A stretch of 64,000 nucleotides of DNA from Mytilus trossulus (GCF_036588685.1 NC_086386.1:65844001-65908000), one strand, 5' to 3'; positions 5,126 to 29,857 are shown, counted from the stretch's first letter. The notes: a model not told the origin generated them from the letters alone. Made by a program: numbers and translations.

Positions 5126-6599
5126 TACTTTTTTTCGGCTTGGACAAGTTTTTTTTTGGTTTTTTTTTCTTACATTGCCCCGGCACTGACGCGTCAACTT
5201 ATACAAATGAGAGAGTCTTTAATCGAGAAATTTTCTTCTTTTTTTTTTTTATGTTAAAGGTGTAATACCACCAAATCATGGTACGTCACATCCGGTTGCA
5301 TACGAAAGTAGGTCTAAAAAAATATTCCCTTGAATTTGACCGTTGTAGGTAATTAATCCTACATTTTATTGCAGTAAAACTATTTCTGAGTCATAAACAA
5401 ATGTCTTGGGTATTTCAAAATACCATTATTTTTTATTTGCGATTTCTATAGAAAATTTTGTAATCTTGAGGTTGCATGGTGACTAAACCTTGTACACAGA
5501 TAGCATAAGGGGAGAAATTTGATTGGTTAACTTCCAATGATGGTTATTTTCTTATATGCAATGAAATGTTATGTGAAACTTTTTCTATAGAACTGGACAG
5601 GATAAAACTTTACTCATGCCAAGTATTTCTTTATTTGAAACAAAGATAAATTCTACACAATTTTTTGAAAAGTGCAAATTTAACAAAGACTAATAGGGGA
5701 AAATCAATGGTGGTATTACACCTAAATAGCTCTTTTTAACTAAAAAAAAAGAAGAAGAAAAAGAAAGCAGGATTAACAACACTTCATTTCCTAGACGGTT
5801 TACTACGAAATCTCAAATTGTAATAATTTCAAAATCGAGAGGAAATTGCATAAAATAGATATGTCATTTTGCTACATGTATCATACGGAACCAACAATCA
5901 TTCTCAGGCAGCAATGACTTTTATTGTTTCATTGCATTTAAGGCGAGTGCATCATGAAAGGTGCACTTGAATAGGCCCCTATTTGTTTTGCTTTTTAGTA
6001 AATGTACGCCTATCATTTGTCAACTTGTTTAAGTTAGCTATATTATCGGCACAATTGCATGTATAGTTATCCTCTTTTAATTCGAATCCGAAGTTTAACA
6101 ATTTGAGAAAACGGTAGGATTTACTATTCGGATTTTCATTAAAACTGTAAAAGTTCTCAATACAGCTACTATAAATTGTAACACGTTAAAAGCAATTGCT
6201 GTGGTTGTTTTTTTTTTTCTCGTTTTTTTCTTCTTTCTTCAACTGACACAATTTAACCGCCATTCAGTATGATATATAACACGTTAGATAATGTTACGTC
6301 GTACCAAATGTCAGTTTCTGAACCATTCAGTCATCTTCTAAAAGCTATATAGACTTTACATTTGCCTCAGTATACATACTGTTTAGGAGATGATAGGTTT
6401 TTCAATAGATTGTTACATGACCTTGTGTGCTAACAAATATTTCTGAATTATATCTAGCCAAATTATCGGTTTCAAACAATTGCAGTTACACGAACAATTT
6501 CTTTCATTATTAAAAGTTATGGGGTGCCCATTTGCAAAAACAAACCAGGTTCTGGCGAGGTTCGAACTCGCGACCTTCTGCGTGTAAAGCAGACGTGAT

Positions 6600-7637
6600 T
6601 TTTTTTTTTTTATCTTTATTAAAATCAAACATCATATAATACAAATAAAACAAATTATAAAATCAATTGTCCTTGATTGTTCTCATTATAGCTATATGCT
6701 ATACTTTGTATTCACAATACTGTTATTTCTCATTTCAGGTACACAATAATTATTACAATTTAAAGACTAGAACATTGTCTGTTTCTTCTAACAAAGGGTT
6801 ATCCATTAAAAACTTTTTTTGAAATATATGACTCATATTATGACATCGACAGAGATAGACATACATATATGTTACATAATGTTTTAATGTATATTGAAAT
6901 AATTTTATCAAATTTACACTAGAATAACCACTATTCAACAAGTTTCTCCTTCTGAAGATACAAAATCTGGCAACAGACATAAAAAAATTAAGAAAAGAAT
7001 CATTCACACCTTTCATATGCCATCTCAATCCCAAAATCAATAGTTCCTCACTTCTTACTAAACTAATCTTATCTGAATCACAGTTTTCAAATATTCTAAC
7101 TAATAAGGATGACAAATAATTATGAAAATCTTCAAGTTTATCACAATTCATAAATATATGCAGGATGTCTTCCTTTTCACTGCAACACACTTTACAGATA
7201 TTATCATCAACTAAACCTATCTTTTGAAGTTTTACATTAGTAAAAATACAGTTATGTAACACCTTAAAGTCTAACTCAACCAAATTAGAAGGTTTCCAAT
7301 ACATATTGACATGTTCCCATATTTTACTGAATGCTTCAGAACTCACATCAAATTCTGATTTCCATAACTCAATACCAACAGGTTCTTCAACAATATTTTC
7401 CAACATAATAGTATATAATGTTTTAGTACTACATAATTTCAAATCATAATGCACATTTTTACAAATAATTGAAATGTCTATTGTTCTTGGTATAGATATT
7501 CTGTGAATATCAGTGTTCACTGTGTTTTTCCATTCTACAGGTATAACATTCAACAAGTTTCTATATCTATCAACTACATATTGTACATTAACATCTTCAT
7601 ATACAACTTGAATCATTTCAACTATAGCATGATCAGG
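6600..7637 (-). mobile_element. 5'-truncated Tx1/L1-clade non-LTR retrotransposon E1 inserted in tRNA-Val(TAC)
   Basis: On the minus strand it ends AATAAAGAT-(A)n joined to TCACGTCTG of the tRNA. TSD ATCACG (6 bp; 10 bp with one mismatch). Contains an ORF2 C-terminus. Confidence 0.9.
6753..7637 (-). CDS. Truncated ORF2 C-terminal region (post-RT, zf-RVT zinc finger) of E1
   Basis: LDFKVLHNCIFTN..L and CKVC-x8-HIFMNC CCHC motif typical of the L1/Tx1 ORF2 end. The frame stays open up to the truncation junction. Confidence 0.88.
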   Translation of the reverse strand, partial: PDHAIVEMIQVVYEDVNVQYVVDRYRNLLNVIPVEWKNTVNTDIHRISIPRTIDISIICKNVHYDLKLCSTKTLYTIMLENIVEEPVGIELWKSEFDVSSEAFSKIWEHVNMYWKPSNLVELDFKVLHNCIFTNVKLQKIGLVDDNICKVCCSEKEDILHIFMNCDKLEDFHNYLSSLLVRIFENCDSDKISLVRSEELLILGLRWHMKGVNDSFLNFFMSVARFCIFRRRNLLNSGYSSVNLIKLFQYTLKHYVTYMYVYLCRCHNMSHIFQKKFLMDNPLLEETDNVLVFKL

Positions 7638-8069
7638 CGTGATAACCACTACACCACAGAACCGGACAATGTACTTATCAAATATTTTCGAACTTATACT
7701 TCAGTTTATATATCATGTGAAAATCGCTAAACAAATAGGCATATCATCAGAGTCTAACTTGTGCCTCTCAGCTTAGATTGCTATAGCACACACAGGTTAA
7801 AATGAAACCACTGACACACATGGGGAGAGCAAGATAAAAAGAAAAGTTTTCAACTGCACTCTTCCATATTTCAGAATGTATCACGTACTTCTTTTAGGTT
7901 TTATAAGTGCTTCCTATAAGTTTGCACGAAGGACTTTTCAAATGTTTAATACAATGTTCTTAATAAAAAATCACAGTAATGCAAATGAGTATTAAAAAAC
8001 CACCAATACGCCAATGATCAGTCGGACAGCTGACTAATAAATAAATATATAAGACACAATTCATTAATG

Positions 8070-8142
8070 GTTTCCGTGGTGTAGTGGTTATCACATCCGC
8101 TTAACACGCGGAAGGTCCTGAGTTCAATCCTCAGCGGAAACA
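8070..8142 (+). tRNA. trnV-AAC: tRNA-Val(AAC)
   Basis: Same sequence as 866-938. Confidence 0.96.
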
Positions 8143-9687
8143 TACTTTTTTTCGGCTTGGACAAGTTTTTTTTGTTTTTTTTTTCTTTACATTGCCCCGG
8201 CACTGACGCGTCAACTTATACAATAGAGAGAGTCTTTAATCGAGGAATTTTCTTCTTTTTTTTTTTTTATGTTAAAGGTGTAAGTTTTTTTTGTTTTTTT
8301 TTTCTTACATTGCCCCGGCACTGACGCGTCAACTTATACAATAGAGAGAGTCTTTAATCGAGGAATTTTCTTTTTTTTTTTTTTTTTTTATGTTAAAGGT
8401 GTAACACCACCAAATCATGGTACGTCACATCCGGTTGCATACGAAAGTAGGTCTAAAAAAATATTCCCTTGAATTTGACCGTTGTAGGTAATTAATCCTA
8501 CATTTTATTGCAGTAAAACTATTTCTGAGTCATAAACAAATGTCTTGGGTATTTCAAAATACCATTATTTTTTATTTGCGATTTCTATAGAAAATTTTGT
8601 AATCTTGAGGTTGCATGGTGACTAAACCTTGTACACAGATAGCATAAGGGGAGAAATTTGATTGGTTAACTTCCAATGATGGTTATTTTCTTATATGCAA
8701 TGAAATGTTATGTGAAACTTTTTCTATAGAACTGGACAGGATAAAACTTTACTCATGCCAAGTATTTCTTTATTTGAAACAAAGATAAATTCTACACAAT
8801 TTTTGGAAAAGTGCAAATTTAACAAAGACTAATAGGGGAAAATCAATGGTGGTATTACACCTAAATAGCTCTTTTTAACTTAAAAAAAAAAGAAGAAGAA
8901 AAAGAAAGCAGGATTAACAACACTTCATTTCCTAGACGGTTTACTACGAAATCTCAAATTGTAATAATTTCAAAATCGAGAGGAAATTGCATAAAATAGA
9001 TATGTCATTTTGCTACATGTATCATACGGAACCAACAATCATTCTCAGGCAGCAATGACTTTTATTGTTTCATTGCATTTAAGGCGAGTGCATCATGAAA
9101 GGTGCACTTGAATATGCCCCTATTTGTTTTGCTTTTTAGTAAATGTACGCCTATCATTTGTCAACTTGTTTAAGTTAGCTATATTATCGGCACAATTGCA
9201 TGTATAGTTATCCTCTTTTAATTCGAATCCGAAGTTTAACAATTTGAGAAAACGGTAGGATTTACTATTCGGATTTTCATTAAAACTGTAAAAGTTCTCA
9301 ATACAGCTACTATAAATTGTAACACGTTAAAAGCAATTGCTGTGGTTGGTTTTTTTTTTCTCGTTTTTTTCTTCTTTCTTCAACTGACACAATTTAACCG
9401 CCATTCAGTATGATATATAACACGTTAGATAATGTTACGTCGTACCAAATGTCAGTTTCTGAACCATTCAGTCATCTTCTAAAAGCTATATAGACTTTAC
9501 ATTTGCCTCAGTATACATACTGTTTAGGAGATGATAGGTTTTTCAATAGATTGTTACATGACCTTGTGTGCTAACAAATATTTCTGAATTATATCTAGCC
9601 AAATTTTCGGTTTCAAACAATTGCAGTTACACGAACAATTTCTTTCATTATTAAAAGTTATGGGGTGCCCATTTGCAAAAACAAACC

Positions 9688-9760
9688 AGGTTCTGGCGAG
9701 GTTCGAACTCGCGACCTTCTGCGTGTAAAGCAGACGTGATAACCACTACACCACAGAACC
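9688..9760 (-). tRNA. trnV-TAC: tRNA-Val(TAC)
   Basis: Same sequence as 387-459. Confidence 0.95.
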
Positions 9761-10202
9761 GGACAATGTACTTATCAAATATTTTCGAACTTATACTTCA
9801 GTTTATATATCATGTGAAAATCGCTAAACAAATAGGCATATCATCAGAGTCTAACTTGTGCCTCTCAGCTTAGATTGCTATAGCACACACAGGTTAAAAT
9901 GAAACCACTGACACACATGGGGAGAGCAAGATAAAAAGAAAAGTTTTCAACTGCACTCTTCCATATTTCAGAATGTATCACGTACTTCTTTTAGGTTTTA
10001 TAAGTGCTTCCTATAAGTTTGCACGAAGGACTTTTCAAATGTTTAATACAATGTTCTTAATAAAAAATCACAGTAATGCAAATGAGTATTAAAAAACCAC
10101 CAATACGCCAATGATCAGTCGGACAGCTGACTAATAAATAAATATATAAGACACAATTCATTAATGGTTTCCGTGGTGTAGTGGTTATCACATCCGCTTA
10201 AC

Positions 10203-11682
10203 TTGTGTGTTCCATTCCTGATTGGGCTTTACAGTCAATCAAGAAGATATGTTTAGATTTTTTATGGAATAATGGATCGCATTTGATCAAATATAGAACG
10301 ATTATAGGAGCTAAAACTGATGGAGGGTTAAAATACCCTGATATTTATTTAAAACTATTAGCATTTAGATTAAAATTTTTGACAAGATTTTTAGATAAGG
10401 ATTTTCATGCTATATGGAAATACACTATGACATATTTTTTGAACAAGATACACAATACAAATCTAGGTGTACATTGTTTATTTTTATTGCTACAAAAGAA
10501 AGACTGTACAAACATACCTGTGTTTTATAGGGAAATCATTGATGCATGGCAATATTTTAAACCTTATGTTGATATTGATATACGATCGGTTGATATTTTT
10601 AATCAACCAATTTTTTTGAACGAATCCATCAAGGTGAATGGTAAATGCATACTTTGGAAACAGTTTTTATTAGCTGGAATTACCAAATTGAAACATGTAG
10701 CATATGAAGTGGTTCCAGGTTTTTTACCTTTTAATGCTATTTATGAAATGATTGAAAATGTTGATGACAATGTAGATTGTAATAAACTAAGACAGCAATA
10801 TAATAGTTTGCTAGAATGTATTCCAAATGAATGGAAAAAGGTGATATTAAATGAAACAAAACCAGTTAACTGTGATGAGGTTCCATTGTTTATTGTAAAT
10901 TATAATAACAAAACAAAAGATTTTGTATGTTGTAAAACAAAAGATTTTTATGGTATATTAGTAGATAAATGTTATATTGAACCTGATGCTCATCAATATT
11001 GGTTAGAAGTTTTAATGTCCAATATGTTCCTTTTAAGTTCGTATGGACAAGTGTTCATTGTTATTGGAAATCGCCAGACTGTGTGCAATTAGATTTTAAA
11101 ATTGTTCACAATAGAATATTTACAAATTTAAAACTAAAAAGAATAAAACTTTCTGACTCAGACATTTGTGATAGTTGTAAATCTGAAGTAGAAGATTTGT
11201 TTCACTTATTTTTGAAATGTCATGATCTAGATGTTTTTCATAGCTATATGTTTAGTTTTTTATGTGAGCTTCTAGAGAAATGTAAAATTGATGTCTTGGT
11301 AAATCAAGGATATAGACAGATGTTTTTGCTTGGTATGACAAGTACTTATACTGATGTAAATACATATTTTGTTAATTTTGTTCTTTCTGTTGCAAGACTT
11401 TGTGTTTTCAAAAGGAGACAAATGATCAAAAATGATGTCAAGAAAATAGATCTTACGAGATTTTTCAGGTATACACTGAAACATTATATTTCTTATTTTC
11501 ATGTATATTGTAAGATGGTTAACAAGATGAACACTTTTGAAAGGAACTTTCTAAAGAATAATTGTAAAATCATTGAAATAGATGGTGTTTTGTTACTGTG
11601 ATACTCTATTGAATATTTTAATCTTTTATTATCAATATGAATTGTGATTTTATATGTTTTATTGAATAAAGATAAAAAAAAA
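10203..11682 (+). mobile_element. 5'-truncated Tx1/L1-clade non-LTR retrotransposon E2 inserted in tRNA-Val(AAC)
   Basis: 16-bp TSD ATCACATCCGCTTAAC (10187-10202 / 11683-11698). Ends AATAAAGAT-(A)n. Confidence 0.93.
10205..11601 (+). pseudogene. Truncated, frameshifted ORF2 C-terminal half of E2
   Basis: FLW...GGLKYPD motif that follows L1/Tx1 RT domains. Frame change near 11000. CDSC-x8-HLFLKC zinc finger. Confidence 0.88.
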
Positions 11683-12050
11683 ATCACATCCGCTTAACAC
11701 GCGGAAGGTCCTGAGTTCAATCCTCAGCGGAAACATACTTTTTTTCGGCTTGGACAAGTTTTTTTTGTTTTTTTTTTCTTACATTGCCCCGGCACTGACG
11801 CGTCAACTTATACAATAGAGAGAGTCTTTAATCGAGGAATTTTCTTCTTTTTTTTTTTTTTATGTTAAAGGTGTAAGTTTTTTTTGTTTTTTTTTTCTTA
11901 CATTGCCCCGGCACTGACGCGTCAACTTATACAATAGAGAGAGTCTTTAATCGAGGAATTTCCTTCTTTTTTTTTTTTTTTATGTTAAAGGTGTAACACC
12001 ACCAAATCATGGTACGTCACATCCGGTTGCATACGAAAGTAGGTCTAAAA

Positions 12051-12070
12051 AAATATTCCCTTGAATATTT
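12051..12070. other. Fold-back inversion junction of the array
   Basis: ...aaatattc-cctt-gaatattt...: arms are reverse complements around a 4-nt loop, and array orientation switches here. Confidence 0.92.
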
Positions 12071-12267
12071 TTTTAGACCTACTTTCGTATGCAACCGGAT
12101 GTGACGTACCATGATTTGGTGGTGTTACACCTTTAACATAAAAAAAAAAAAAGAAGAAAATTCCTCGATTAAAGACTCTCTCTATTGTATAAGTTGACGC
12201 GTCAGTGCCGGGGCAATGTAAGAAAAAAAAAAAAAAAAAAAAAACTTGTCCAAGCCGAAAAAAAGTA

Positions 12268-14840: not shown

Positions 14841-15512
14841 GGTTTGTTTTTGCAAATGGGCACCCCCATAACTTTTAATAATGAAAGAAATTGTTCGTGT
14901 AACTGCAATTGTTTGAAACCGAAAATTTGGCTAGATATAATTCAGAAATATTTTTTAGCACCCAAGGTCATGTAGCAATCTATTGAAAAACCTATCATCT
15001 CCTAAACAGTATGTATACTGAGGCAAATGTAAAGTCTATATAGCTTTTGGGAGATGACAGAATGGTTCAGAAACTGACATTTGGTACGACGTAACATTAT
15101 CTAACGTGTTATATATCATACTGAATGGCGGTTAAATTGTGTCAGTTGAAGAAAGAAGAAAAAAACGAGAAAAAAAAACCAACCACAGCAATTGCTTTTA
15201 ACGTGTTACAATTTATAGTAGCTGTATTGAGAACTTTTACAGTTTTAATGAAAATCCGAATAGTAAATCCTACCGTTTTCTCAAATTGTTAAACTTCGGA
15301 TTCGAATTAAAAGAGGATAACTATACATGCAATTGTGCCGATAATATAGCTAACTTAAACAAGTTGACAAATGATAGGCGTACATTTACTAAAAAGCAAA
15401 ACAAATAGGGGCATATTCAAGTGCACCTTTCATGATGCACTCGCCTTAAATGCAATGAAACAATAAAAGTCATTGCTGCCTGAGAATGATTGTTGGTTCC
15501 GTCTGATACATG

Positions 15513-15809
15513 AGTAGTATAGTACTTGAACGACTCCAGCGCACCCCCTCCAAAAAAAAAAAAAAATTTGACCCCCAAAAAATTACCCTCATTTCAAGTA
15601 AAAGAGCCCTAAATTTTCATAAAAAAAAGCAAAAAAACACCCCAAAAAACACCAAATTTTCTTACTCCCAAAAATTTTTTTTTTTACTTTTTTTAAAAAA
15701 AAACGTTATTAAAAACACCCAAAAAACAACAAAAAAATTCAAAAAAAAATAAATAAAAAAAACCGGGAGAACAGGCAGAGAAAAAATTCTGTGGGATTTA
15801 AGAGAAAAA
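15513..15809 (+). repeat. Polinton left TIR (main part)
   Basis: Reverse complement of ~30640-30936. Confidence 0.93.
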
Positions 15810-16336
15810 AATAATTTCCCCAGTGCGCCCCAACCTTGATTTTTAATTAATTTTATCAATATAGTCTAGTAATAAAACGGATCAATACGACTACAACTTC
15901 AATTGCTTTTCATAAGCAGCTTTTTATTGAAACTAAGCATACAAATCAATAGCATTACATTAAACCGATGATCAAAGGATCTTTTCACAACTTTCTATAG
16001 TTAATTCAATAGCAACGATCGATTCTGTATAAAACATTATTGATGACAACATGTTGCCTGGGTGATGTAAACATATAGCAGACGTTTATTGACAGTGGAG
16101 AGATTGGAGTATTTCACAAGAAAATCATCTGTAGGTGTTTATTCATTCTATTATTTTGTGTTGTGAATAGATTCCGTTGTAATACTTTTTTATGAAAAAA
16201 AACCAACAATAAAAACACCCAAAAAACAACAAAAAAATTCCAAAAAAAAATAAATAAAAAAACCGGGAGAACTGACAGAGAAAGAATTCTGTGGGATTTA
16301 AGAGAAAAATAAAAAAATCAATTTTTACTTTAAAAA

Positions 16337-16918
16337 ATGAAACAACCTACAGCTCCTAATTTATATCCAGAATTACCTATAGAAGATGGACAAAATTATA
16401 GACTACAAAAAATAACAGAAATAGAAAAAACATTAATAAATGAGAGAGATAAACGAAAATCACTATACAAAAAATATAAACGCGGAGTTAATGTTACTGA
16501 TGGTGTTGATACAAGTTTAATTTCGACATCTGTTGTTTTAGCTGGTATAGGAATTGCTTTTCCTATCTTTCTTCCCATACAAATTGCAGCTGTTGTATGT
16601 GGAAGTTTAGGAGGTCTAGTTAAATTAATTAGAAGAAAGTTGACAACAAAATCAAAAAAACATTATGAAATTAAAACAATGGCAGAATGCAAGTTAAACA
16701 GCATAAAAGATTTAATATCAAAATCTTTAACTGACGGACAGATAAGTTCAGATGAATTTAAACTTATTTTAGATGAATTAGAAAAATTTAATGAGATGAA
16801 AAAAAATAAAAAAAAAGTAATTTTAAAAAGTTTACCAGATGATGAAAGAAAAAAACTAATTGAGGAAACAGAAAATAGAGTAAAAAACGAATTAAAAAAA
16901 AAAATGGAAAATCTTTGA
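16337..16918 (+). CDS. Polinton hypothetical protein with a central hydrophobic (TM-like) hairpin and coiled-coil C-terminus
   Basis: 193-aa ORF starting at the inner TIR boundary. Hydrophobic stretch VVLAGIGIAFPIFLPIQIAAVVCGSLGGLV. Confidence 0.8.
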   Translation: MKQPTAPNLYPELPIEDGQNYRLQKITEIEKTLINERDKRKSLYKKYKRGVNVTDGVDTSLISTSVVLAGIGIAFPIFLPIQIAAVVCGSLGGLVKLIRRKLTTKSKKHYEIKTMAECKLNSIKDLISKSLTDGQISSDEFKLILDELEKFNEMKKNKKKVILKSLPDDERKKLIEETENRVKNELKKKMENL

Positions 16919-17078
16919 TTTTCTTTAATAAAATCGTTATACGAATTTTAGTTGATAACGGAAATCCACCAAACTATGAATCAATTTTTAATTAAATAAA
17001 TGGATGAAGAAACAAAAGAAAAATTAGTAAAAAATGTAAAATAATGTTAAATAAAAAATTTAATTATTTTTATCTTAA

Positions 17079-17351
17079 GGTGGTACCTAACACTACAGGG
17101 AGATAACTCTGTAAAATCATCTAAACGTTTTAATTACGTTACGTTGTTAAGGGAATATTAAGCTTCTGAATGATCAAAATTAGTGTTTGTCAAACTGCTA
17201 TATAACCAGTGTAATTTTTCTGACAAAACGGTTGGTTCAAAATTTTTGAAATTTTTATATATTAGTTAAAGGGTCAAAGTAAATACTTTGATAAAATTTT
17301 ATGAAAATTAAACGAGCCAAATTTATTTTAGTTAAAGTGTTAGGTACCACC
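17079..17351. mobile_element. 273-bp Kolobok-type MITE nested in the Polinton
   Basis: Perfect 16-bp TIR GGTGGTACCTAACACT/AGTGTTAGGTACCACC flanked by TTAA on both sides (17075-17078, 17352-17355). Confidence 0.9.
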
Positions 17352-17402
17352 TTAAGTTGTTTTTAACAGGTTCTTTTTATTGTTTATTATCTAATATTTT
17401 AG

Positions 17403-18723
17403 ATGAATAAAATGGCTGAAGGAGGTTATGAGTTTGATAATGATTATGATAAAGAAGAAGAAGAAACGTCTGTTCAAAATGATGAAGAGTTTCAAAAGTA
17501 TATAAATAAAGAAATTGAAGTAACAAGAGATTTATCAGAAAATGATGCTAAAATTCGTAAAAAAGAAACTACAAAAAAAATGATTAAACAATTTTATAAA
17601 AAAAATGGTGAAACTACACGTAATGAAGTAGGTTTTTTTGTTAGGGAAGATCATAATGAAAGACAAATCTTATATGTAAAAGATGAAAAAGGTAATGATA
17701 TTGCATTAACATATTACCAAAAAGGAGTATTAAAGTTTTATAAATTTAGCACTCTTCAAAGAGAATACGGTGTTAATTTTGTCAGGGATGTTTTAGGTGT
17801 AGATGATTATAAAATATCTGATAATTTAAGAGAAGCTAGAGCAGATTTTCAAGATTTTCAAAGAACGATAAAATCACCAATTCGTGAACTCGATAATATA
17901 GAAATTCCATTACAAGAAATATCTACACAAGAAGAAGGACAAGAATTATTAGAAACAGCAAGTAATGCAGAAACATATGTGAAAGAAATAGAAACTTCAT
18001 TTATTGAACAAGGAACATCTTTAGTAGATAATGAAACACAAACAGAAATGACAAAAAGAGAGATGGATGGAATAATCAGTGCAATGACATCAGTAAAGGA
18101 AGAGATTGCAAATGAATTAGCAAAACTGAATGAAACAAATAAAGACTTAGCAAAAGAAAATGCCAAATTAGAACAAGCTAAAGAAGACAATGATGAATTT
18201 CAAATAGATAGAATACGTAGTCGAATAAGAGAGTTGGAATCTGAGAGAAGTGCAAGAATAGAAGTAATTAATATTAATAGAGAAAAACTACGTAGTCAAT
18301 TAGATAGATTTAAACAAACAATACATAAAATTTTAAACGAAGACAGAACATTAGGTGAAAGAATAAGAACATTATTCAGAGAACAAGGAATAACAATAGT
18401 TAGTGTTTTAACTGCTTTTGGAATGATTATTGGTGTTATTGTTGAGGCATTTACTGGTTCTCCTTCTCCTGCTCCTTCTCCTCCATCAAAAGATGGTGTA
18501 CAAGACTGGATAAAAAAAACAATTAAAAAATCTTGGAAAATTATTATCTTTTCTTGCAGGAAAATTAGCAGCTGCATTACCAGGTATTATAGGTTCTATT
18601 GTTTCTTGGTTATTGTCTGCAACAAAAGACGTAGTAAATTGGTTTGCAAACAACTTATGGGCATTGCTTATTTTAGTTGTTAGTTTATTGTTTACTGCTG
18701 CTAGAGATTATTTGAAAAAATAA
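17403..18723 (+). CDS. Polinton long coiled-coil protein with hydrophobic C-terminus (one extra A in an A-run near 18512-18519)
   Basis: 426-aa ORF. Removing one A restores ...WIKKQLKNLGKLLSFLAGKLAAALPGIIGSIVSWLL...NNLWALLILVVSLLFTAARDYLKK* ending at 18723. Confidence 0.78.
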
Positions 18724-19940
18724 AGTGCTGTAAATCCTATTACAATACTTACAAATATTATTGCTTGTTTATTATCTTCATGATCTTCATGTTCAGTTTT
18801 TTTTATTGGATCTATTTTTGGTTCTTTAGGCTTTTCAGGTTTTATAGGTTCTTGTGGTTTTACAGGTTCTTTTGGTTTAAAATCAACATGATCAAAATTT
18901 TTATTATTTAAATCATCATTTAACCCAAGTGTTTGATTTTCTGTTGCAATTATAATTTTATTATTATAACCAACAATACTTCCAATTTGCAAAACCATAT
19001 CACTGGGAGACATATATAAACCAAGTCCATAAGCATAATCAACTTTACTTCTTGCGTATTTTAAAACATTTTCGTAATTCGATATTTGGGTGGGTAAATC
19101 GATAGGACTATTTATTACATCTTGTACATTTGCTAAGAATTGTTTTTGTGCATCAAATCCTGTTCCTACTTTTAAAATTTTTGTTTTTGTTTGAGATTGT
19201 GCACCTAACAAAGCCCATACATAAATTTTAATACTTTCATTAATACGTTCAATACCTGCTTGTGTAAACCCATTAGAGTTATCTAAAATAAATGTTGTCC
19301 AAGCCATACTTATATCTTTTTCATGATACAATTTATCATGAATATTAAAGAATGGACCATCCTTTTTATGATTTTGTCTATATTCACCACTTGGTTTATA
19401 ATATTGCTCAAAACTTCCTAATCCTTGACATGATGATTCTAGTTTTTGTCTCCAATCTGTATTTGGAGAAATATTAAATTCATCACATATTTTTTGATAT
19501 ACAGCTTTGTCATATGAGTTCTTATAATAACAGAAAGAAGAATCTGTTGGTAAAGGTGATTTAAGTTCTTTTAAAATTCTTGCAATGCAATAATATAAAT
19601 GAAACATATAAAAAGACTTTGTAAGATTTGAAGTATTTTGTATATGATCATTATAAGAAACACCACATCCTGTACTTGCACACCAAACTGCAAAATTTAA
19701 CTGACATTGCCACCAATCAAATGAAGAATGAATCCAGGCATTCCATGGTTCGTTAGTGTGTATTGATGGGTTTTGATAGTTTTGAAATAAATCAGGAAAA
19801 GATGTTTTAAAGTTCTCTTTTTGATTTACAAATATTGTTTGATTTACAAGATTTGTTTTTAATTGATGATCTTTTTCAGAATATTTAATACCTGGATTAT
19901 ATGAAACATTAGGATTATATTTAAATTCTTTTGTTATCAT
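18708..19940 (-). CDS. Polinton hypothetical protein, 410 aa, with PKEP-rich stalk and C-terminal TM anchor
   Basis: Long ORF. WQCQLNFAVWCASTGCGVS core, KPKEPVKPQEPIKPEKPKEP linker, terminal AIIFVSIVIGFTALYFFK. Confidence 0.82.
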   Translation of the reverse strand: MITKEFKYNPNVSYNPGIKYSEKDHQLKTNLVNQTIFVNQKENFKTSFPDLFQNYQNPSIHTNEPWNAWIHSSFDWWQCQLNFAVWCASTGCGVSYNDHIQNTSNLTKSFYMFHLYYCIARILKELKSPLPTDSSFCYYKNSYDKAVYQKICDEFNISPNTDWRQKLESSCQGLGSFEQYYKPSGEYRQNHKKDGPFFNIHDKLYHEKDISMAWTTFILDNSNGFTQAGIERINESIKIYVWALLGAQSQTKTKILKVGTGFDAQKQFLANVQDVINSPIDLPTQISNYENVLKYARSKVDYAYGLGLYMSPSDMVLQIGSIVGYNNKIIIATENQTLGLNDDLNNKNFDHVDFKPKEPVKPQEPIKPEKPKEPKIDPIKKTEHEDHEDNKQAIIFVSIVIGFTALYFFK

Positions 19941-19955
19941 TTTTTTATATTAAAA

Positions 19956-20597
19956 ATGTTTCATACTATTTCAAATATTGATAATACAATAAACTTAGAA
20001 CAATACATAAATAACAGAAATGGAAATAAACGTATTGGTTTGAAATTTATAAGATACAGTATAGGTTGGTATAATGTTTATCATGGGTTTATAACAAAAA
20101 CCAGAGAGGAACAGCAAAGGATTATGAATGGTTATTATAGTTTTCAACAAATAGTGGATGAATTTCAAAAAGAAAATATTGTATTATCCGTAAATGAAGC
20201 AAATGGTATCGCTTCATTAAACACTACTACTGAGTTAAAGATAAGTAAGGGTTTGGGAAATATGTTAGGATTTAATAATAAACGTAAATTCGAACCTAAT
20301 GAATTACATTATGGAAACAAATTTGTGGATTTTGCTATCCATAAATCATTATATATCCATTTGGAACAAGTTAGCACTTCTCATAATTATCTTGATGGTA
20401 AGCCAAGTACATTATTGGCTGTTATTCCAGTCGAGAATAAAGAGTTTGGTGAAGTTATAACAGCGAGATTTGAGCATCCGGAATATAAGTGTTTAGTAAA
20501 TGATGTTATAACAGAATTGAAATTAGAAATAAGAGATGAAAATAATAACAAGATAATTAATCATTTACCAATTAATTGTGTTTTAGAAGTTATATAA
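19956..20597 (+). CDS. Putative minor capsid (penton, single jelly-roll) protein
   Basis: SLYIHL...LDGKPSTLLAVIPV...P.YK.L...ITELKLEIRDENN pattern of Polinton minor capsid proteins. Lies upstream of the MCP. Confidence 0.75.
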   Translation: MFHTISNIDNTINLEQYINNRNGNKRIGLKFIRYSIGWYNVYHGFITKTREEQQRIMNGYYSFQQIVDEFQKENIVLSVNEANGIASLNTTTELKISKGLGNMLGFNNKRKFEPNELHYGNKFVDFAIHKSLYIHLEQVSTSHNYLDGKPSTLLAVIPVENKEFGEVITARFEHPEYKCLVNDVITELKLEIRDENNNKIINHLPINCVLEVI

Positions 20598-20610
20598 TTT
20601 ATTTAATAAA

Positions 20611-21156
20611 ATGAGCATACTTGGTGTCAAAAAAAAAAACGTAGATACATCGGAAATAAAAAAGGAAATATTAAATATGAAGAGTGAGCTTCAAACAAGG
20701 GATACTAAGGATAGAGATTTACGCCGGAGTGTCGCTGCCCTAACCATCAGAGTTTTAAATGTTGAAAATATAGTTAGTAATATTAAAAATAAACCAGACA
20801 AAAAATTAATAAGTATAAATGCTGGAATTGATGGTTCAATACATGCAAGACAAAAGTTTAATTTTGGTGATGGTGGTGGTGGTTATTATGTAATGAACTT
20901 TCCAGGACAAATATTGGGTATTAGTTTAGTAAGTTTAAGAACAAACTCAGATAATATAGATGTTATGATAACTGTTAATAATTATAAGACATATAGTTAC
21001 GGAATAAGTTTAAGTAATGGTGACACACACAGTTATCATAACTTTAATATGCCTTTTGAAGTTAAGGCTGGAGATATTATAGGGTTTGTTAGTGAGAGTG
21101 ATAATTCTACATGTATCAATACTCTAGTATCAGTGATAATTGAATTATTTTTATAA
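20611..21156 (+). CDS. Hypothetical protein, possible fibre/spike (N-terminal coiled coil plus beta-rich C-domain)
   Basis: 181-aa ORF between the penton and MCP genes. Function inferred from architecture only. Confidence 0.65.
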   Translation: MSILGVKKKNVDTSEIKKEILNMKSELQTRDTKDRDLRRSVAALTIRVLNVENIVSNIKNKPDKKLISINAGIDGSIHARQKFNFGDGGGGYYVMNFPGQILGISLVSLRTNSDNIDVMITVNNYKTYSYGISLSNGDTHSYHNFNMPFEVKAGDIIGFVSESDNSTCINTLVSVIIELFL

Positions 21157-21174
21157 CAAATTTAATCCTTAAAA

Positions 21175-22440
21175 ATGTCGGCATACGGAAACAAATTAAA
21201 TCCTTACAGAAAAATAAGAGAACCCCGTGGTGTGAAAGGTATTCGTCAAAGTGTATCAATAACAAATAATCCTTCAACTATTGATCAAAATCAACAGCTA
21301 TTAGTGAGATTCCCCAATCTAAGCAATAATGATGTTATTGTTCCTGGAACAACCAGATTGGCATTTGAAATAGAACTCACATCTACAGACGACAATGCAA
21401 CTATATATCAAAACATAGGAAGAACAATAGTTAAAAAAACAACAATTCGTATAAGTGGAAATGAAATTATGTCAATTGATGATAGTGATATTTATCATTG
21501 TTATGTTGATTTATGGAAATCTACATCTGAACGTTTAAATATGGCATACTAAGGAATTGGTGAAACAAACATGTTAAAACACAGAGTTGGTACGGATGAT
21601 AAAGCATCAAACATAGGGGATGAAGCAATTGCAACTGCATATGGTGCAAGATTTTGTATCCCACTTGATTTTGAACTATTAGAAACTCATATGCCTTTTT
21701 ATCAAGCAGGTCTTGGTGATAGACTTGAATATGAACTTACATTTAATAATTATAGCAATGTTATTAAATCAACAGATACATCTGCAAGTTATACAATCAA
21801 AAACATTTGTTTAGAATTTGATATGGTTACTGATGCAGAATTAGCAAGACAGATAAGACAACAAGTTAATGGTAAGATGGTTATTTTGTACGATAGAATA
21901 CTAAGACATAGAAAAATAACCAAAAACAAATCTGATACATTGTGGAATATAAATTTAAATGTTCCAGCTAGAAGTATGAAAGGAATTCTAATGTTGTTCG
22001 AAGATCCTGAAAGAACAAGTACCGAAACTTATTATAATCCTAACATAACAAAAGTAGAAATGACAATAGAAGGTGTTCCAAATCAACTATACAGTCAAGG
22101 AATGAAAGCATATCAACAATGGGATGAAATAAATAAATTCTTTGCTTTAAATTCAAAAAGAAATAAAACAACAGAAGAAGTTTTAAAGGATTTAAATTTA
22201 TCCTATACAACATTAGAAAAATATCTTACAACTAATTATGCATTATGGTTAGATTTACGTTCAACAGATGACAACTCATTACACGGTTCAGGTAGAAGAA
22301 TTGAAAATGCTTCTGAAGGTATTACTATCCAAATAACTAAAACAGCAGGAGCAAATAAATTAATAAATGTTTATCTGTTTGTTATACAAGATGCACAAAT
22401 TAATTTTGAAGATGGAAGATTTAAAGAAGTTAATTACTAG
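21175..22440 (+). pseudogene. Putative major capsid protein (double jelly-roll, ~421 codons) with an in-frame stop at 21550-21552
   Basis: ORFs 21175-21552 and 21571-22440 share a frame (MAY*GIGETNML). Size, beta-rich pattern (FCIPLDFEL, LEYELTF, LWLDLR) and position fit an MCP. Confidence 0.78.
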
Positions 22441-22808
22441 GAATTACTGTCTTGACGAACAAGTTCTGTTATCCTAATCTGTTCAGAAATTAAATCACTT
22501 TTCTTTATTTCCAATATAGTCTTTTCTTCATTCTCACAGGTTCTTTTTGTTATGAATTTTTTAAGCTTAGTCTTTGCACTAACTTTTTGTCTTGTTAATC
22601 GAAGCCAAATCCGTCTCTTGTTTCTGTCACCAAAATCTTCCTTAGTTTTATTTATTCTCTCGGTTAAATATTCAATTTCCTTTTTTATGCTGTTTATATC
22701 CATATCTTGTATATTTATCGTATTATTACGTTTCACTAATAATGTTTCAAGTTTTTCTAATTCATCCGACACTTTAATTAAATAACATCTTCTCAATTCA
22801 GATTCCAT
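22437..22808 (-). CDS. Hypothetical coiled-coil protein, 123 aa
   Basis: ATG-initiated ORF converging on the MCP stop codon. No recognisable motif. Confidence 0.55.
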   Translation of the reverse strand: MESELRRCYLIKVSDELEKLETLLVKRNNTINIQDMDINSIKKEIEYLTERINKTKEDFGDRNKRRIWLRLTRQKVSAKTKLKKFITKRTCENEEKTILEIKKSDLISEQIRITELVRQDSNS

Positions 22809-22947
22809 TTTGAAGTTACTGTAGCAATATTAAATTGCAAATTTAATTAAAAACCGCACTTTGTTACCTGTAAATATTTACAATGATCGATTTAGTTTAT
22901 TTAAAGTCATATCCTATTGAATTAAATATAAACAGTTTGCTTGGATA

Positions 22948-23052
22948 CAGTAAACATCTCCTTAGTTACAATGAACACTTACTTAGTTACAGTAAACAAC
23001 TCCTTAGATGCAGTAAACAACTCCTTAGATGCAGTAAATACTTACTTAACTA
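22948..23052. repeat. 5 x 21-bp degenerate tandem repeat (CAGTAAACAACTCCTTAGATG)
   Basis: Read directly from the sequence in the non-coding gap between the 123-aa ORF and the integrase. Confidence 0.85.
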
Positions 23053-23352
23053 CAGGTTATTGTAAATTTTACCTGAGAATTTTGTTTACAACTATTAAAC
23101 TTTTACTGACGCAGTTAATTAGTTTGATGCATGATTTAACAAACGAATTCAAGTATGTTTCTTACATTTTGTCGATATTATTGAATTTGTTCTTTTATTA
23201 ATATATATAATATTACAATTGACTGTAGTTAGATTTAAATATCAAATTCACAACGTTTCAACTATTCAAACCAGTAATTACTGTTTGCTATGCAAAACAG
23301 ACATTTAAGATTTAATGGATTTATTCAATGGATTTTAAATCTACCTAGAGAT

Positions 23353-24171
23353 CTAAAACTTAGTCAAAAGTAATTCTTGTTCATAGAAAGCACCTGTTAT
23401 TTCGTCGCCTTTTAAATCAATTATTTTATAAGTAAAAGGAATTGTATTTAAAACTTTTTCAATTACAAATATTTCTTTAGTCCAACGAGTAGTATAACCC
23501 TTTTCAAATTTACCCTTTTTTTTTGTTATTCTTACTCTAGTACCTACTTCGAATTTAGGTTTTTTAATTTTCTCTTCTTTTTCTGGATATAAATTTTTAT
23601 ACACTGTTAATTCATTTTTTAATTTACTTGCTTGAACAGGTGTCATTTTAATTGAAGAATGTACTGTATTATTATAATTTTTAACTAATTTATCTAATAT
23701 ATCATAATATTTTAAAGTTTCATTAGCAGTAAAGTATTTATACATATGTTGTTTCATTGTTCCTATCCATCGTTCCACTACACTGGATTTTTCTTCATTC
23801 TCAGTTGAATATAACTTTATGTTATTATCTTTTAACAATTCTTTTACTTGTCGATTATAAAATTCGGATCCTTTATCTGACCAAATATATATTGGTTTTC
23901 TTTCTTTAAATAATGTTTTAAATGCTTCACTCACTGCTACTCCTGTTTTATTTTTCAATGGAATCAACCAACCATATTTACTAAAAACATCTATAACTGC
24001 TAATAAATATTTATAGTGTTTATTTTGTTTTGAATATTGTTGTATATCTATCAAATCAACTGCCCATGTTTGATCTATTGAATGAACATAAACACGTCTT
24101 TTAGGAAAAGATTTTATAACTCTATGATGTAATTCATCTGCTAATTTATTTGTTAGATTTGTTTTAGACAT
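23353..24171 (-). CDS. Retroviral-like (RVE, DDE) integrase of the Polinton
   Basis: WAVDLID, AVIDVFSKYGW, IWSDKGSEF, SSVVERW, KGYTTRWTKEIF motifs. Likely start MSKTN (the ORF extends to 24219). Confidence 0.96.
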   Translation of the reverse strand: MSKTNLTNKLADELHHRVIKSFPKRRVYVHSIDQTWAVDLIDIQQYSKQNKHYKYLLAVIDVFSKYGWLIPLKNKTGVAVSEAFKTLFKERKPIYIWSDKGSEFYNRQVKELLKDNNIKLYSTENEEKSSVVERWIGTMKQHMYKYFTANETLKYYDILDKLVKNYNNTVHSSIKMTPVQASKLKNELTVYKNLYPEKEEKIKKPKFEVGTRVRITKKKGKFEKGYTTRWTKEIFVIEKVLNTIPFTYKIIDLKGDEITGAFYEQELLLTKF

Positions 24172-24201
24172 TTTGAAGTAACTAAAATGTTTTTTTTTAA
24201 A

Positions 24202-24423
24202 ATGGATGAAAGAAAACATTGTTCAAAATGTAATGAATACAAGTTACTAAGTGAATATTACAAAGCAAAAGACAAACCACTGGGAGTTAAATCTGCATGT
24301 AAAGAATGTTTAAAACCTTCAAAACAAAATCATTATCAAAATAACAAAGAAAAATATAAAAAAGCTTTTAAAGAATTTATGGAAAGAAATCCTTTTTATT
24401 GGAATTTATATCCAAGAAAATAA
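24202..24423 (+). CDS. Small zinc-finger protein (CxxC...CxxC)
   Basis: CSKC-x22-CKEC, resembling the N-terminal Zn fingers of HNH/endonuclease VII-type proteins but without a nuclease domain. Confidence 0.7.
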   Translation: MDERKHCSKCNEYKLLSEYYKAKDKPLGVKSACKECLKPSKQNHYQNNKEKYKKAFKEFMERNPFYWNLYPRK

Positions 24424-24449
24424 TATAATTAAAAATTAAATATTACAAA

Positions 24450-27887: not shown

Positions 27888-27898
27888 TTTATTTTAAT

Positions 27899-28318
27899 TT
27901 ATTTTAATTTCCAAACAATAAAACCAGTTAATGTCATACCACCAACAACAAATGCAATCTCTCTATTTTTCTGGTCTTCTGATGGAGTATAAAAATCACT
28001 TAATGTAGGTTTAGGTGATAATGAAGTTAATTTTTTATTCGTGACACGATAGTATAGTTTCATTGCTTGGTCAACATCATCAAAAGTCTGAACCGCATGA
28101 TGTTCCTTTTGTAATTGTTCATTTATAAAATCTAATCTTTGTATTCTTTTTTTATTCCATTCTGATTGTGCTTTTTCTAATTTTTCTATAGCTTTATCAT
28201 GTCTTATTTTCTCTTCATTTGCATTACTACCCATATGTGAAAATAAATAATTACTCCCTGAAAATGCAAAAGCATTTGTTATTGCCCCACCAAGCATCAT
28301 TGTTAAAGCACTTGCCAT
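27899..28318 (-). CDS. Polinton small protein with hydrophobic N- and C-termini, 139 aa
   Basis: ORF in a tightly packed minus-strand run. Ends IAFVVGGMTLTGFIVWKLK. Confidence 0.75.
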   Translation of the reverse strand: MASALTMMLGGAITNAFAFSGSNYLFSHMGSNANEEKIRHDKAIEKLEKAQSEWNKKRIQRLDFINEQLQKEHHAVQTFDDVDQAMKLYYRVTNKKLTSLSPKPTLSDFYTPSEDQKNREIAFVVGGMTLTGFIVWKLK

Positions 28319-28334
28319 TTTATAAAAACAAAAA

Positions 28335-28571
28335 TTACTTCATAATATCAGCAGGTATAATACCTTGCTTAATCAACATATCTTTTGTTGCCATCGCAAG
28401 TAATATATCAATGGACAACATTACAACATCATTCATATTAAAATCCACTTTTGGTGCTGGCCTCCTTAAAACCTTTTTACCTATTTCTGCATATCCAACT
28501 GTTAACAATGTTTCCACTCCAGCATGATATAACATATTTGCTATTTGTTTTCCGTCTTTTTGAGTTGTCAT
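28335..28571 (-). CDS. Polinton small hypothetical protein, 78 aa
   Basis: Tightly packed ORF with an AAAATG start context like its neighbours. Confidence 0.7.
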   Translation of the reverse strand: MTTQKDGKQIANMLYHAGVETLLTVGYAEIGKKVLRRPAPKVDFNMNDVVMLSIDILLAMATKDMLIKQGIIPADIMK

Positions 28572-28586
28572 TTTAATGTACTAAAT

Positions 28587-29635: not shown

Positions 29636-29647
29636 TGCTTTTTTTTA

Positions 29648-29850
29648 TTGCTTATTTTGGTTAAATTACTTAAGAATTACTTATTTTGGTTAAATTACTT
29701 AAGAATTACTTAAGCATTACTTAAGTATTATTTTGCTTATTTTGGTTAAATTACTTAAGAATTACTTATTTTGGTTAAATTACTTAAGAATTACTTAAGC
29801 ATTACTTAAGCATTACTTAAGCATTACTTAAGCATTACTTGAGAATTGCT
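29648..29850. repeat. Tandem array of 11-bp TTACTTAAG(C/A)A units with a longer superperiod
   Basis: Read directly from the sequence. Non-coding, downstream of the ATPase gene. Confidence 0.88.
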
Positions 29851-29857
29851 AAAAAAA

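Follow-up and report, generated by a model that had tools for sequence, protein, structure and literature searches.

Site-specific LINEs are studied as models of how a retroelement picks a harmless address and as possible safe-site gene-insertion tools. Among the target-specific LINEs of the Tx1 clade, Tx1L inserts in Tx1D transposons, Keno in U2 snRNA genes, Mutsu in 5S rRNA genes, and Kibi and Koshi in microsatellites, while Dewa is described as targeting the spacer of tRNA-Leu (PMC3706591). The legend of Kojima's 2015 Tx1 tree lists U2, U5, 5S, satellites, transposons and microsatellites as targets (PMC4494074), and a survey of bivalve transposable elements reports Tx1, and not L1, among bivalve L1-group LINEs (PMC10294476). 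Three LINEs encoding a restriction-like endonuclease, NeSL-1_TV (tRNA-Pro), LIN15_SM (tRNA-Arg) and LIN25_SM (tRNA-Glu), insert in single tRNA genes (PMC4640811). Dada DNA transposons insert at fixed positions inside tRNA and 5S genes, many families targeting nucleotides 8–13 within the A box (PMC8869645), whereas Dictyostelium TRE5-A and TRE3 insert beside tRNA genes (PMC3706591). Yeast Ty3 likewise targets tRNA genes irrespective of isotype.

Two interrupted valine tRNA genes

We analyzed a window of 64,000 nucleotides of Mytilus trossulus DNA containing an array of tRNA-Val genes, two of which are interrupted by 5′-truncated copies of APE-type LINEs, E1 and E2, no longer functional. Both elements lie in sense orientation between tRNA positions 21 and 22, as follows:

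6547–6598, minus strand: 3′ part (positions 22–73) of the tRNA-Val-TAC gene interrupted by E1, beginning with the 3′ copy of the target-site duplication, TCACG
6599–7637, minus strand: E1, a 5′-truncated copy (~1.04 kb) of family A, holding the C-terminal 298 codons of ORF2 with the CCHC knuckle, the 3′ UTR, and AATAAAGAT (6620..6612) followed by 13 A
7638–7663, minus strand: 5′ part (positions 1–26) of the same gene, ending with the 5′ copy of the duplication, (A)TCACG
10167–10202, plus strand: 5′ part (positions 1–36) of the tRNA-Val-AAC gene interrupted by E2, ending with the 5′ copy of the duplication, (A)TCACATCCGCTTAAC
10203–11683, plus strand: E2, a 5′-truncated (1.48 kb), frameshifted copy of family D, holding the ORF2 C-terminal region in two frames (overlapping ORFs 10205–11092 and 10999–11601), the 3′ UTR, and AATAAAGAT (11665–11673) followed by 10 A
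11684–11735, plus strand: 3′ part (positions 22–73) of the same gene

The last A of the E1 tail may be tRNA A21, so that the element ends at 6599 or 6600. The halves were assigned by comparison with the intact Val-TAC gene at 9688–9760 and the intact Val-AAC gene at 8070–8142, and in intact paralogues the 22-mer flanking each element starts 21 nt into the gene called by ARAGORN. The target-site duplication of E1 is 5–6 nt, rather than the 6–10 nt given in the earlier note, and that of E2 is 15–16 nt, as the note stated. The 19-mer GTGGTGTAGTGGTTATCAC, shared by the two isoacceptors, occurs 29 times in the window at up to one mismatch (28 exact, 1 with one mismatch), compared to 0 in 100 shuffles. 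ARAGORN found 27 intact Val genes; the two extra hits (7639–7657 on the minus strand and 10173–10191), where it called no gene, correspond to the interrupted genes, making E1 and E2 the only interruptions in the window. The C-terminal proteins of the two elements align at 40% identity over 197 aa and 35% over 264 aa.

The observation made in the earlier note, that two diverged families are inserted at the same nucleotide inside tRNA-Val genes, in sense orientation and with target-site duplications, was therefore confirmed, and chance is excluded by the genome-wide tally given below.

Related insertions across the genome

In the Mytilus genome, copies 98–99% identical to E1 were found on contigs C19, C8 and C1, and the 3′ parts following such copies at the same position belong to Gly-CCC, Gly-TCC, Val-CAC and Thr-CGT genes. 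The nearest copies of E2 are 95% (contig C7) and 85% (contig C4) identical. Sister families lie at this position in at least a dozen other isoacceptor types, in Ile, Trp, Lys, Glu, Tyr, Leu, Gln, Arg, Thr and a Met-like gene. ARAGORN calls on intact paralogues placed the insertion 20–23 nt into the gene for 12 isoacceptor types, including one that ARAGORN labels SeC, and Arg-CCT from family E; flanks without such a paralogue (Glu-TTC, Glu-CTC, Leu-CAA, Tyr-GTA, Gln-TTG, Gln-CTG, Arg-ACG and Arg-TCT) were named by eye from the anticodon loop. Exhaustive searches with 3′-end patterns recovered 29 places for TTTTAATAAAGATAAAAAA, against 1 for the reversed-pattern control, comprising 9 of family A, 6 of family S, 10 of family B and 4 unrelated, and 10 places for TTATTGAATAAAGATAAAAAA, comprising 9 of family C/D and 1 unrelated.

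After collapsing array duplicates with identical poly(A) length and flanks (Glu-TTC ×3, 5S ×2, His ×2, Arg-ACG ×2), we counted 34 independent events: 25 in bona fide tRNA genes at 21/22, 4 in tRNA-like sequences carrying a T-arm or B box, 2 in 5S rRNA genes, 1 in tRNA-His with its 3′ junction at 9/10, and 2 (L015 and L002) outside recognisable Pol III genes. All tRNA, tRNA-like and 5S events are in sense orientation. Of the 25 events in bona fide tRNA genes, 3 are in Val genes and the other 22 in Gly, Thr, Ile, Lys, Glu, Trp, Tyr, Leu, Gln, Arg and a Met-like gene. Family S copies that are 98–100% alike lie in 5S genes (two independent events, at +27/28 and +28/29), in tRNA-Lys at 21/22 and in tRNA-His; it is the only family with 5S hits, and the local 5S sequence does not resemble the tRNA site. 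In contrast, family E is dispersed, with 1 of its 82 3′ ends in a tRNA gene, compared to 6–10 3′ ends per targeted family. Two metagenome relatives, L092 and L093 (55–56% ORF2 identity and ~68% nucleotide identity to families A, B and C), have the same tail and junction, in Thr-AGT and Tyr-GTA, and a distant metagenome relative (28% identity) sits in a 5S-like flank within about 3 nt of the mussel 5S sites. Evidence from RNA was negligible, amounting to 3 reads in about 6% of one run.

Across these copies, tails range from A6 to A20, copy lengths are about 0.04, 0.5, 1.0, 1.5, 1.7, 5.6 and 6.0 kb, target-site duplications span 5–16 nt, and target deletions of about 0.2 and 1 kb occur, consistent with the hallmarks of target-primed reverse transcription. 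Full-length copies with 12-nt target-site duplications were found on C19 in Gly-CCC (~6.0 kb, to the 3′ end of which E1 corresponds) and on contig C6 in Ile-AAT. The full-length elements carry an ORF1 with CCHC knuckles and a 1300-aa ORF2 with the architecture of an L1-group LINE: Exo_endo_phos at residues 18–241 (E 1e-8), RVT_1 at 526–766 (E 9e-32) and zf-RVT at 1117–1173 (E 6e-6; 27.3 bits, just under the 27.5 cutoff). ORF2 aligns with human L1 ORF2p over residues 15–882 (E 3e-85). The L1 endonuclease chimera carrying the Tx1L β-hairpin loop (PDB 2v0r; PMC1950540) scored 90 bits, against 74 for both wild-type L1-EN (1vyb) and the R1Bm-loop chimera (2v0s); the gain lies in the loop (11 residues, basic, with a DG-containing tip), which aligns without a gap. 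The designation Tx1-like is thus supported indirectly, as it also is by the bivalve survey that lists Tx1, and not L1 (PMC10294476). In our trees, which contained no reference Tx1 or L1 sequences, E1 and E2 fall in the two deepest branches of the clade, the E2 protein piece groups with a Mytilus edulis protein (P0019) next to family C, and family E is nested inside the tRNA-targeting clade. The lineage is old enough to have split into at least seven families, at roughly 50–65% ORF2 identity, that keep the site.

The earlier note's interpretation, an old lineage with conserved tRNA-Val specificity recognizing the shared 19-mer, was partly supported: the diverged families, the age of the lineage and, indirectly, the Tx1-like affiliation held, whereas the valine specificity did not. 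Both window copies are in Val genes only because the window is a Val-gene array, and the 19-mer does not delimit the recognition sequence. Across 15 reconstructed targets, only G at −4 (14/15), T at −2 (13/15), A at −1 (14/15) and G/T at +1 (11/4) are kept.

Models for target choice

We consider it likely that E1 and E2 derive from two families of one clade of Tx1-like (L1-group, APE-type) LINEs that integrates inside RNA polymerase III genes, overwhelmingly inside tRNA genes of any isotype, at the boundary between the D loop and the 3′ strand of the D stem, just past the A box. The fixed 3′ junction (AATAAAGAT(A)n, then position 22), the variable 5′ junction and the existence of full-length elements were observed directly. 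What follows is inferred from the junctions alone, including the nick, its strand and the role of the endonuclease: the ORF2 endonuclease would nick the antisense strand, which Pol III copies, opposite 21/22; the freed 3′ end would prime cDNA synthesis on the poly(A) tail; the sense strand would be cut a variable 5–17 nt downstream; and the 5′ end would often be lost. Our best guess for site choice is direct recognition of tRNA-gene DNA around G18 G19 .. T A | G/T by the endonuclease, whose target-contacting hairpin loop is of the Tx1L type, together with other ORF2 parts, although some additional pull towards Pol III genes is possible given the 5S insertions of family S. The few conserved target bases, and a distance from G18 G19 to the junction that varies from 2 to about 4 nt, so that the site tracks the loop/stem boundary rather than a fixed spacing, are awkward for simple sequence reading. 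The 5S insertions point to something other than the D-loop sequence, and the His event and the two events outside recognisable Pol III genes do not conform to this site. In this view, family E has lost the specificity.

A tentative alternative is tethering, in which the element's proteins or RNP would be brought to active Pol III genes by TFIIIC, TFIIIB, Pol III or a transcription-dependent DNA structure, the nick falling at a preferred step about 20–28 bp into the transcribed region, as an intragenic counterpart of TRE5-A or Ty3. The insertions of near-identical family S copies in 5S, tRNA-Lys and tRNA-His genes, the lack of obvious shared sequence between the 5S and tRNA sites, the insertions in tRNA-like sequences carrying a T-arm or B box, the sense orientation, the tracking of the D-loop/D-stem boundary and the 5S-like flank of the distant metagenome relative are in line with this model, and TRE5-A is reported to hit both tRNA genes and Pol III complex sites on the rDNA element (PMC5391098). 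However, known tethered elements insert beside the gene (PMC3706591), and single-nucleotide precision over more than 20 tRNA types with different leader lengths fits reading of the conserved A-box end better than a ruler measured from the transcription start. In addition, Tx1L endonuclease is itself sequence-specific (PMC1950540) and the endonuclease of this clade carries a Tx1L-like loop, and only 3 of 34 events (two 5S, one His) demand tethering. In its strongest form, which we regard as unlikely but not excluded, the clade would recognize tRNA genes, and in family S also 5S genes, through the Pol III complex or a transcription-dependent structure and not through a DNA word. It would then be the first metazoan LINE, and the first intragenic, nucleotide-precise one, to use the Pol III machinery as its address; because that address is conserved in all eukaryotes, targeting would carry over to other hosts, and family E would be a natural loss-of-targeting mutant pinpointing the protein determinant.

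Apparent specificity produced after insertion, by random insertion, selective loss everywhere except in redundant multicopy genes and spread of a few insertions through tandem-array amplification or gene conversion, is very unlikely. Some copies are array duplicates, and family E shows that dispersed insertion is tolerated, but the events remaining after collapse lie on many contigs, in more than 20 tRNA types, with different poly(A) lengths and 5′ junctions, and selection cannot place insertions at one phosphodiester bond and in one orientation. Specificity for tRNA-Val, suggested by the two window copies and the third family A copy in Val-CAC, is refuted by the Gly and Thr insertions of copies nearly identical to E1 and by the 22 non-Val events.

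Comparison with described elements

The tRNA-directed non-LTR elements that we found in print each use one isotype, or a spacer, or insert beside the gene, and we found no published intragenic LINE that hits all tRNA isotypes, in a search that did not extend to Repbase or Dfam. Here, single, apparently still intact families hit tRNA genes of nearly all isotypes at one structural position next to the A box, which is among the most conserved DNA in eukaryotes. The same genome offers natural contrasts, a sister family that also enters 5S genes and a nested family that lost targeting and has the most 3′ ends, making comparative mapping of the specificity determinant directly feasible. The clade also matters for tRNA gene annotation in bivalves, because interrupted tRNA genes are missed by tRNA finders, as ARAGORN missed both in this window.

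With the target-specific Tx1-clade LINEs, these elements share the APE endonuclease, RT and C-terminal CCHC architecture, a Tx1L-like hairpin loop, and insertion at a fixed site in multicopy RNA genes with variable target-site duplications or truncations; the published families, however, are each tied to one target, and that of Dewa is a spacer rather than the gene body. NeSL-1_TV, LIN15_SM and LIN25_SM are also non-LTR elements inserted in tRNA genes, but they belong to the NeSL-related group and each is reported for one isotype, whereas the present clade is APE-type. Dada elements share fixed intragenic positions, but are DDE transposase elements with 6–7 bp target-site duplications, each family tied to one or two isotypes through primary sequence, while the mussel clade is a LINE with a 21/22 junction and variable duplications. 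TRE5-A, TRE3 and Ty3 resemble it in targeting tRNA genes irrespective of isotype, and the use of Pol III complex sites on the rDNA element by TRE5-A is comparable to family S hitting tRNA and 5S genes, but they insert at a distance beside the gene, whereas the insertions described here lie inside it at one bond.

Two interrupted genes in a tRNA-Val array

The window (contig C14, positions 65844001-65908000, of the 1.3-Gb genome) consists of a tandem array of tRNA-Val(TAC) and tRNA-Val(AAC) genes, in which ARAGORN identified 27 intact genes. The 19-mer shared by the two isoacceptors occurs 29 times at up to 1 mismatch (28 exact, 1 with one mismatch), compared with none in 100 shuffled sequences, and the two additional hits mark two interrupted genes, as follows:

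7663..7638, minus strand: positions 1-26 of the interrupted tRNA-Val(TAC) gene
7637..6599, minus strand: insert E1, 1.04 kb, ending AATAAAGAT plus 13 A
6598..6547, minus strand: positions 22-73 of the same gene
10167-10202, plus strand: positions 1-36 of the interrupted tRNA-Val(AAC) gene
10203-11683, plus strand: insert E2, 1.48 kb, ending AATAAAGAT plus 10 A
11684-11735, plus strand: positions 22-73 of the same gene

The duplicated target is (A)TCACG in E1 and (A)TCACATCCGCTTAAC in E2. Both inserts encode the C-terminal part of a LINE ORF2 with a CCHC knuckle, E2 being frameshifted, and the two proteins are 35-40% identical. What the earlier note had observed, two diverged elements at the same nucleotide of two tRNA-Val genes, is confirmed in every point that matters.

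The array has other irregularities. It reverses orientation at a near-perfect palindrome (window ~12000-12125, centred near 12060): the genes before it read Val-TAC on the minus strand and Val-AAC on the plus strand, whereas those after it are mirrored, marking an inversion junction within the tRNA array. A ~16 kb gap (window 15000-31000) holds ORFs (23353-24219 minus, 24450-27887 plus, 29858-30535 minus and neighbours) with Pfam hits to an rve integrase core, a Pox_A32 packaging ATPase and Endonuclease_7, a gene set reminiscent of a Polinton/Maverick-type virus-like transposon inserted in the array. A second interruption of ~14 kb (window 37900-51700) contains no ORF of 150 aa or more.

To characterize the elements, we searched the genome with E1 and E2, which yielded copies 98-99% identical to E1 on contigs C19, C8 and C1, plus several families at about 67% nt identity. 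Extension of two copies of the E1 family (family A) gave a ~6.0 kb full-length element on C19 and a copy on C1 truncated by ~366 nt. The C19 element has a ~0.3 kb 5' UTR, an ORF1 with two CCHC knuckles and no Pfam hit, and a 1300-aa ORF2 with Exo_endo_phos, RVT_1 and zf-RVT domains, which aligns with human L1 ORF2p over residues 15-882 (E 3e-85). Its endonuclease scores 90 bits against PDB 2v0r, the L1-EN chimera carrying the Tx1L hairpin loop, which takes part in target recognition (PMC1950540), but 74 bits against wild-type L1-EN, and the gain lies in an ungapped match of the 11-residue loop. In addition, a survey of bivalve LINEs lists Tx1, and not L1, among bivalve clades (PMC10294476). 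Together, these indirect lines of evidence, rather than an RT phylogeny with reference sequences, make the designation Tx1-like well supported. The named best protein matches are from Mytilus coruscus (92-97% identity over partial coverage) and M. edulis (82%), and the host is therefore a Mytilus mussel; a Protein Atlas search returned no result for the ORF2 and only uninformative names for the protein entry P0001.

A B-box-like GGTTCGAAC near the 5' end of the full-length family A copy initially suggested a rebuilt Pol III promoter. The first ~60 nt of the 5' UTR are conserved between families, as compared among the 5' end of full-length family A (locus L066, C19), the family C and family B copies on contig C6 (L009+L091 and L038+L089, respectively) and two metagenome relatives, L092 and L093. 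Families A and C share a block with a B-box-like GGTT..CGAA.GCACC followed by an A-box-like ATGTAGTGTT.ATAGGAC, which is partly conserved in family B, L092 and L093, and these three share ..AGCACAGCCC.. This block could be a promoter or an RNA element, although the AT-rich 6 kb body makes Pol III transcription of the whole element unlikely.

The 5' 1.3 kb of the full-length family A copy matched at 0.55-0.81 of sampled words in 16 sequencing runs from several studies, carrying four organism codes and mollusc, seawater and sediment metagenome labels. Mapping of four runs onto this stretch gave 3 RNA reads in about 6% of one raw-read run (X23), none in another (X24), one contig from a run whose RNA label is a guess, and DNA contigs that end within 3 nt of the element's 5' terminus, consistent with the boundary we assigned. 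These data say nothing firm about transcription and provide no evidence for or against co-transcription with the tRNA half.

Insertion sites across the genome

The 3' flanks of the fetched copies show the same junction, poly(A) followed by the first base of the 3' strand of the D stem, in many different tRNA genes. To count insertions without bias, we searched the genome for the 3' ends of the families as exact patterns. Pattern TTTTAATAAAGATAAAAAA gave 29 places, compared with 1 for the reversed control, which we assigned after fetching the 13 flanks not previously seen and checking 36-45 nt of upstream element sequence. Nine belong to family A: Val-TAC (the window copy), Gly-CCC, Gly-TCC, Val-CAC, Thr-CGT, one degenerate tRNA-like flank, and Glu-TTC three times as array duplicates of one very short copy. 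Six belong to family S, described below. Ten belong to family B: Ile-AAT, a Met-like gene that ARAGORN labels SeC, Thr-CGT, Trp-CCA, Lys-TTT, Glu-CTC, Glu-TTC, Leu-CAA, Tyr-GTA and Gln-TTG. The remaining four are unrelated sequences. Pattern TTATTGAATAAAGATAAAAAA gave 10 places, compared with 0 for the control: E2 in Val-AAC, Ile-AAT, Thr-CGT, Gln-CTG, Arg-ACG twice (duplicates), two tRNA-like flanks, one other repeat and one unrelated sequence. Body similarity alone revealed three further relatives: an 85% relative of E2 in Arg-TCT, a 91% relative of E1 in the same tRNA-like sequence as one family C copy, and a 95% relative of E2 with a non-tRNA flank. A near-full-length family A copy in Thr-CGT (L035/L047/L067, C19:1958367-1966769) appears to be split by about 2.5 kb of other DNA between its last 92 nt and the rest, possibly a nested insertion.

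Where an intact paralogue of the target lay in the fetched DNA, ARAGORN placed the insertion 20-23 nt into the gene, which holds for Val-TAC, Val-AAC, Val-CAC, Gly-CCC, Gly-TCC, Thr-CGT, Thr-AGT, Ile-AAT, Lys-TTT, Trp-CCA, Arg-CCT and the SeC-labelled gene; the other isotype names were read by eye from the anticodon loop of the flank. After collapsing array duplicates (same flank, same poly(A) length) and including the two metagenome relatives, we counted 34 independent events: 25 in bona fide tRNA genes at 21/22, 4 in tRNA-like sequences at the equivalent place, 2 in 5S rRNA genes, 1 in tRNA-His at 9/10 and 2 elsewhere. No antisense insertion was seen. The interpretation in the earlier note is partly supported: the elements are Tx1-like, site-specific and old, but the proposed specificity for tRNA-Val is rejected by these flanks.

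Across 15 reconstructed tRNA-type targets, the conserved bases are G at -4 (14/15), T at -2 (13/15), A at -1 (14/15) and G (11/15) or T (4/15) at +1. The number of bases between G18 G19 and the junction varies from 2 to about 4, so that the junction follows the loop/stem boundary rather than a fixed spacing, and one tRNA-like target has T instead of A at -1, indicating that the A is not required. The 5' junctions vary, with target-site duplications of 5-6 nt (E1), 15-16 nt (E2) and 12 nt (full-length A on C19, full-length B on C6, and the His copy), and target deletions of about 1 kb (C1 copy) and about 0.2 kb (second C19 copy).

Family S, family E and metagenome relatives

Three copies are followed by the 3' part of 5S rRNA (Rfam 54-63 bits). 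A pattern search with a 5S motif found nothing, and the intact 5S gene used for comparison was obtained by DNA search. Against this gene, one junction lies after A27, and the other, present as two array duplicates, lies after C28. Grouping by the last 14 nt of the 3' ends merges these copies with family A, but comparison of the bodies showed that the 5S, His and one Lys copy belong to a separate family, S, which is only 64-67% nt identical to A. A separate 5S-specific family was considered and rejected, as the 5S copies are 98-100% identical to each other, to the copy in tRNA-Lys-TTT at the canonical 21/22 site and to the two duplicate copies in tRNA-His. In the His event (L078/L174, C8:50080078-50080580), the 3' junction is at 9/10 and the 12-nt duplication spans positions 10-21, so that its right-hand edge, the 5' junction, coincides with the canonical 21/22 bond. 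One family has thus entered 5S genes twice, a tRNA gene at the usual site once, and a tRNA gene at an unusual site once. The 5S rRNA genes themselves (L086, C8:45609337-45612424, and C8:45.57-45.61 Mb) lie in a 996-bp tandem repeat that also holds a tRNA gene per unit, and this array switches orientation near C8:45.592 Mb.

Family E shares the AATAAAGAT(A)n tail and has 82 3' ends spread over 16 contigs (C1-C15 and C43). Only 5 of the 82 have a GTTCRA within 20-75 nt, of which only one is a tRNA gene, Arg-CCT, and the 15 different family E flanks we inspected show no common sequence. Family E may nevertheless have preferred targets of its own. Copies of different families (C and E; L015 and L016) lie at the same point of the same non-tRNA repeat, GATTGGGAAATG..., two family E copies (L024 and L026) share another repeat as target, and a repeat beginning TAGCCAGTCAAGG... 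recurs as a family E target and also lies in the window's array spacer (L053, L018 and window 34215).

In maximum-likelihood trees of ORF2 (quick search, SH-aLRT support, midpoint root), family E is nested among the tRNA-targeting families, with P0008 and the metagenome element L093 as its sisters (94-98% support). Families A and B form one subclade, family S and L092 form another, and family C and E2's family D form the deepest branch. The trees left out most of the 120 listed proteins, 70 (first tree) or 78 (second tree) of the 80 metagenome loci, and E2's second reading frame. On this nesting of family E, the tRNA address is the older state, and family E, which has the highest count of 3' ends, is a secondary loss.

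To extend the analysis, we scanned JGI-type metagenome contigs with an ORF2 alignment. The two closest of the 80 loci, L092 and L093, have 55-56% ORF2 identity and about 68% nt identity to families A, B and C, and both end TTTTAATAAAGAT plus 10 A. L092 is followed by a Thr-AGT 3' part from position 22, and L093 by an intron-containing Tyr-GTA 3' part from position 22. The 5' flank of L093 is a tRNA-Lys-TTT 5' part running to position 38; the contig therefore joins two different insertions, either through a collapsed assembly or through recombination, with both ends lying in tRNA genes. A regex and T-arm scan of all 80 loci found tRNA flanks only at L092 and L093, whereas Rfam at gathering threshold, run on 40 of the 80, found nothing. 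A distant relative (28% identity; L129 and L130) is followed by a 5S-like 3' part recognized by eye, with a junction within about 3 nt of the mussel 5S junctions in an eye alignment; on L129 the 5S model scored 32 bits, below its gathering score of 38, and Rfam on L130 6850-7020 found nothing at E 0.01 or better. The other 76 loci, at 27-32% identity, showed no tRNA flank, although many of those contigs end before the element does.

Site selection and comparison with known elements

The element anatomy, the fixed 3' junction next to a poly(A) tail, the variable 5' truncation, the variable second junction and the constant sense orientation were observed directly. By contrast, the sequence of integration steps is inferred from the established TPRT model of APE-type LINEs: the first nick would fall on the antisense strand opposite 21/22, priming would occur on the poly(A) tail, and a second cut would be made 5-17 nt downstream on the sense strand. 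As to how the site is found, we favour direct reading of the A-box end by the Tx1L-like endonuclease, because the junction is precise to one bond in more than 20 tRNA types. The 5S hits of family S, the hits in tRNA-like sequences and the strict orientation keep a Pol III-machinery tether alive as a serious rival, possible but less likely as the main determinant. Recognition of tRNA-Val alone is excluded by the range of isotypes entered.

In the full-text literature searched, which does not extend to Repbase or Dfam entries, so that a catalogued family cannot be excluded, we found no description of a LINE that enters tRNA genes of all isotypes at one intragenic position. Among tRNA-related non-LTR elements, Dewa lies in the spacer of tRNA-Leu (PMC3706591). 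NeSL-1_TV (Pro), LIN15_SM (Arg) and LIN25_SM (Glu) are each tied to one isotype (PMC4640811). TRE5-A inserts beside tRNA genes (PMC3706591; PMC5391098). Dada DNA transposons use tRNA positions 8-13, with one or two isotypes per family (PMC8869645). We class the finding with the target-specific Tx1-type LINEs.
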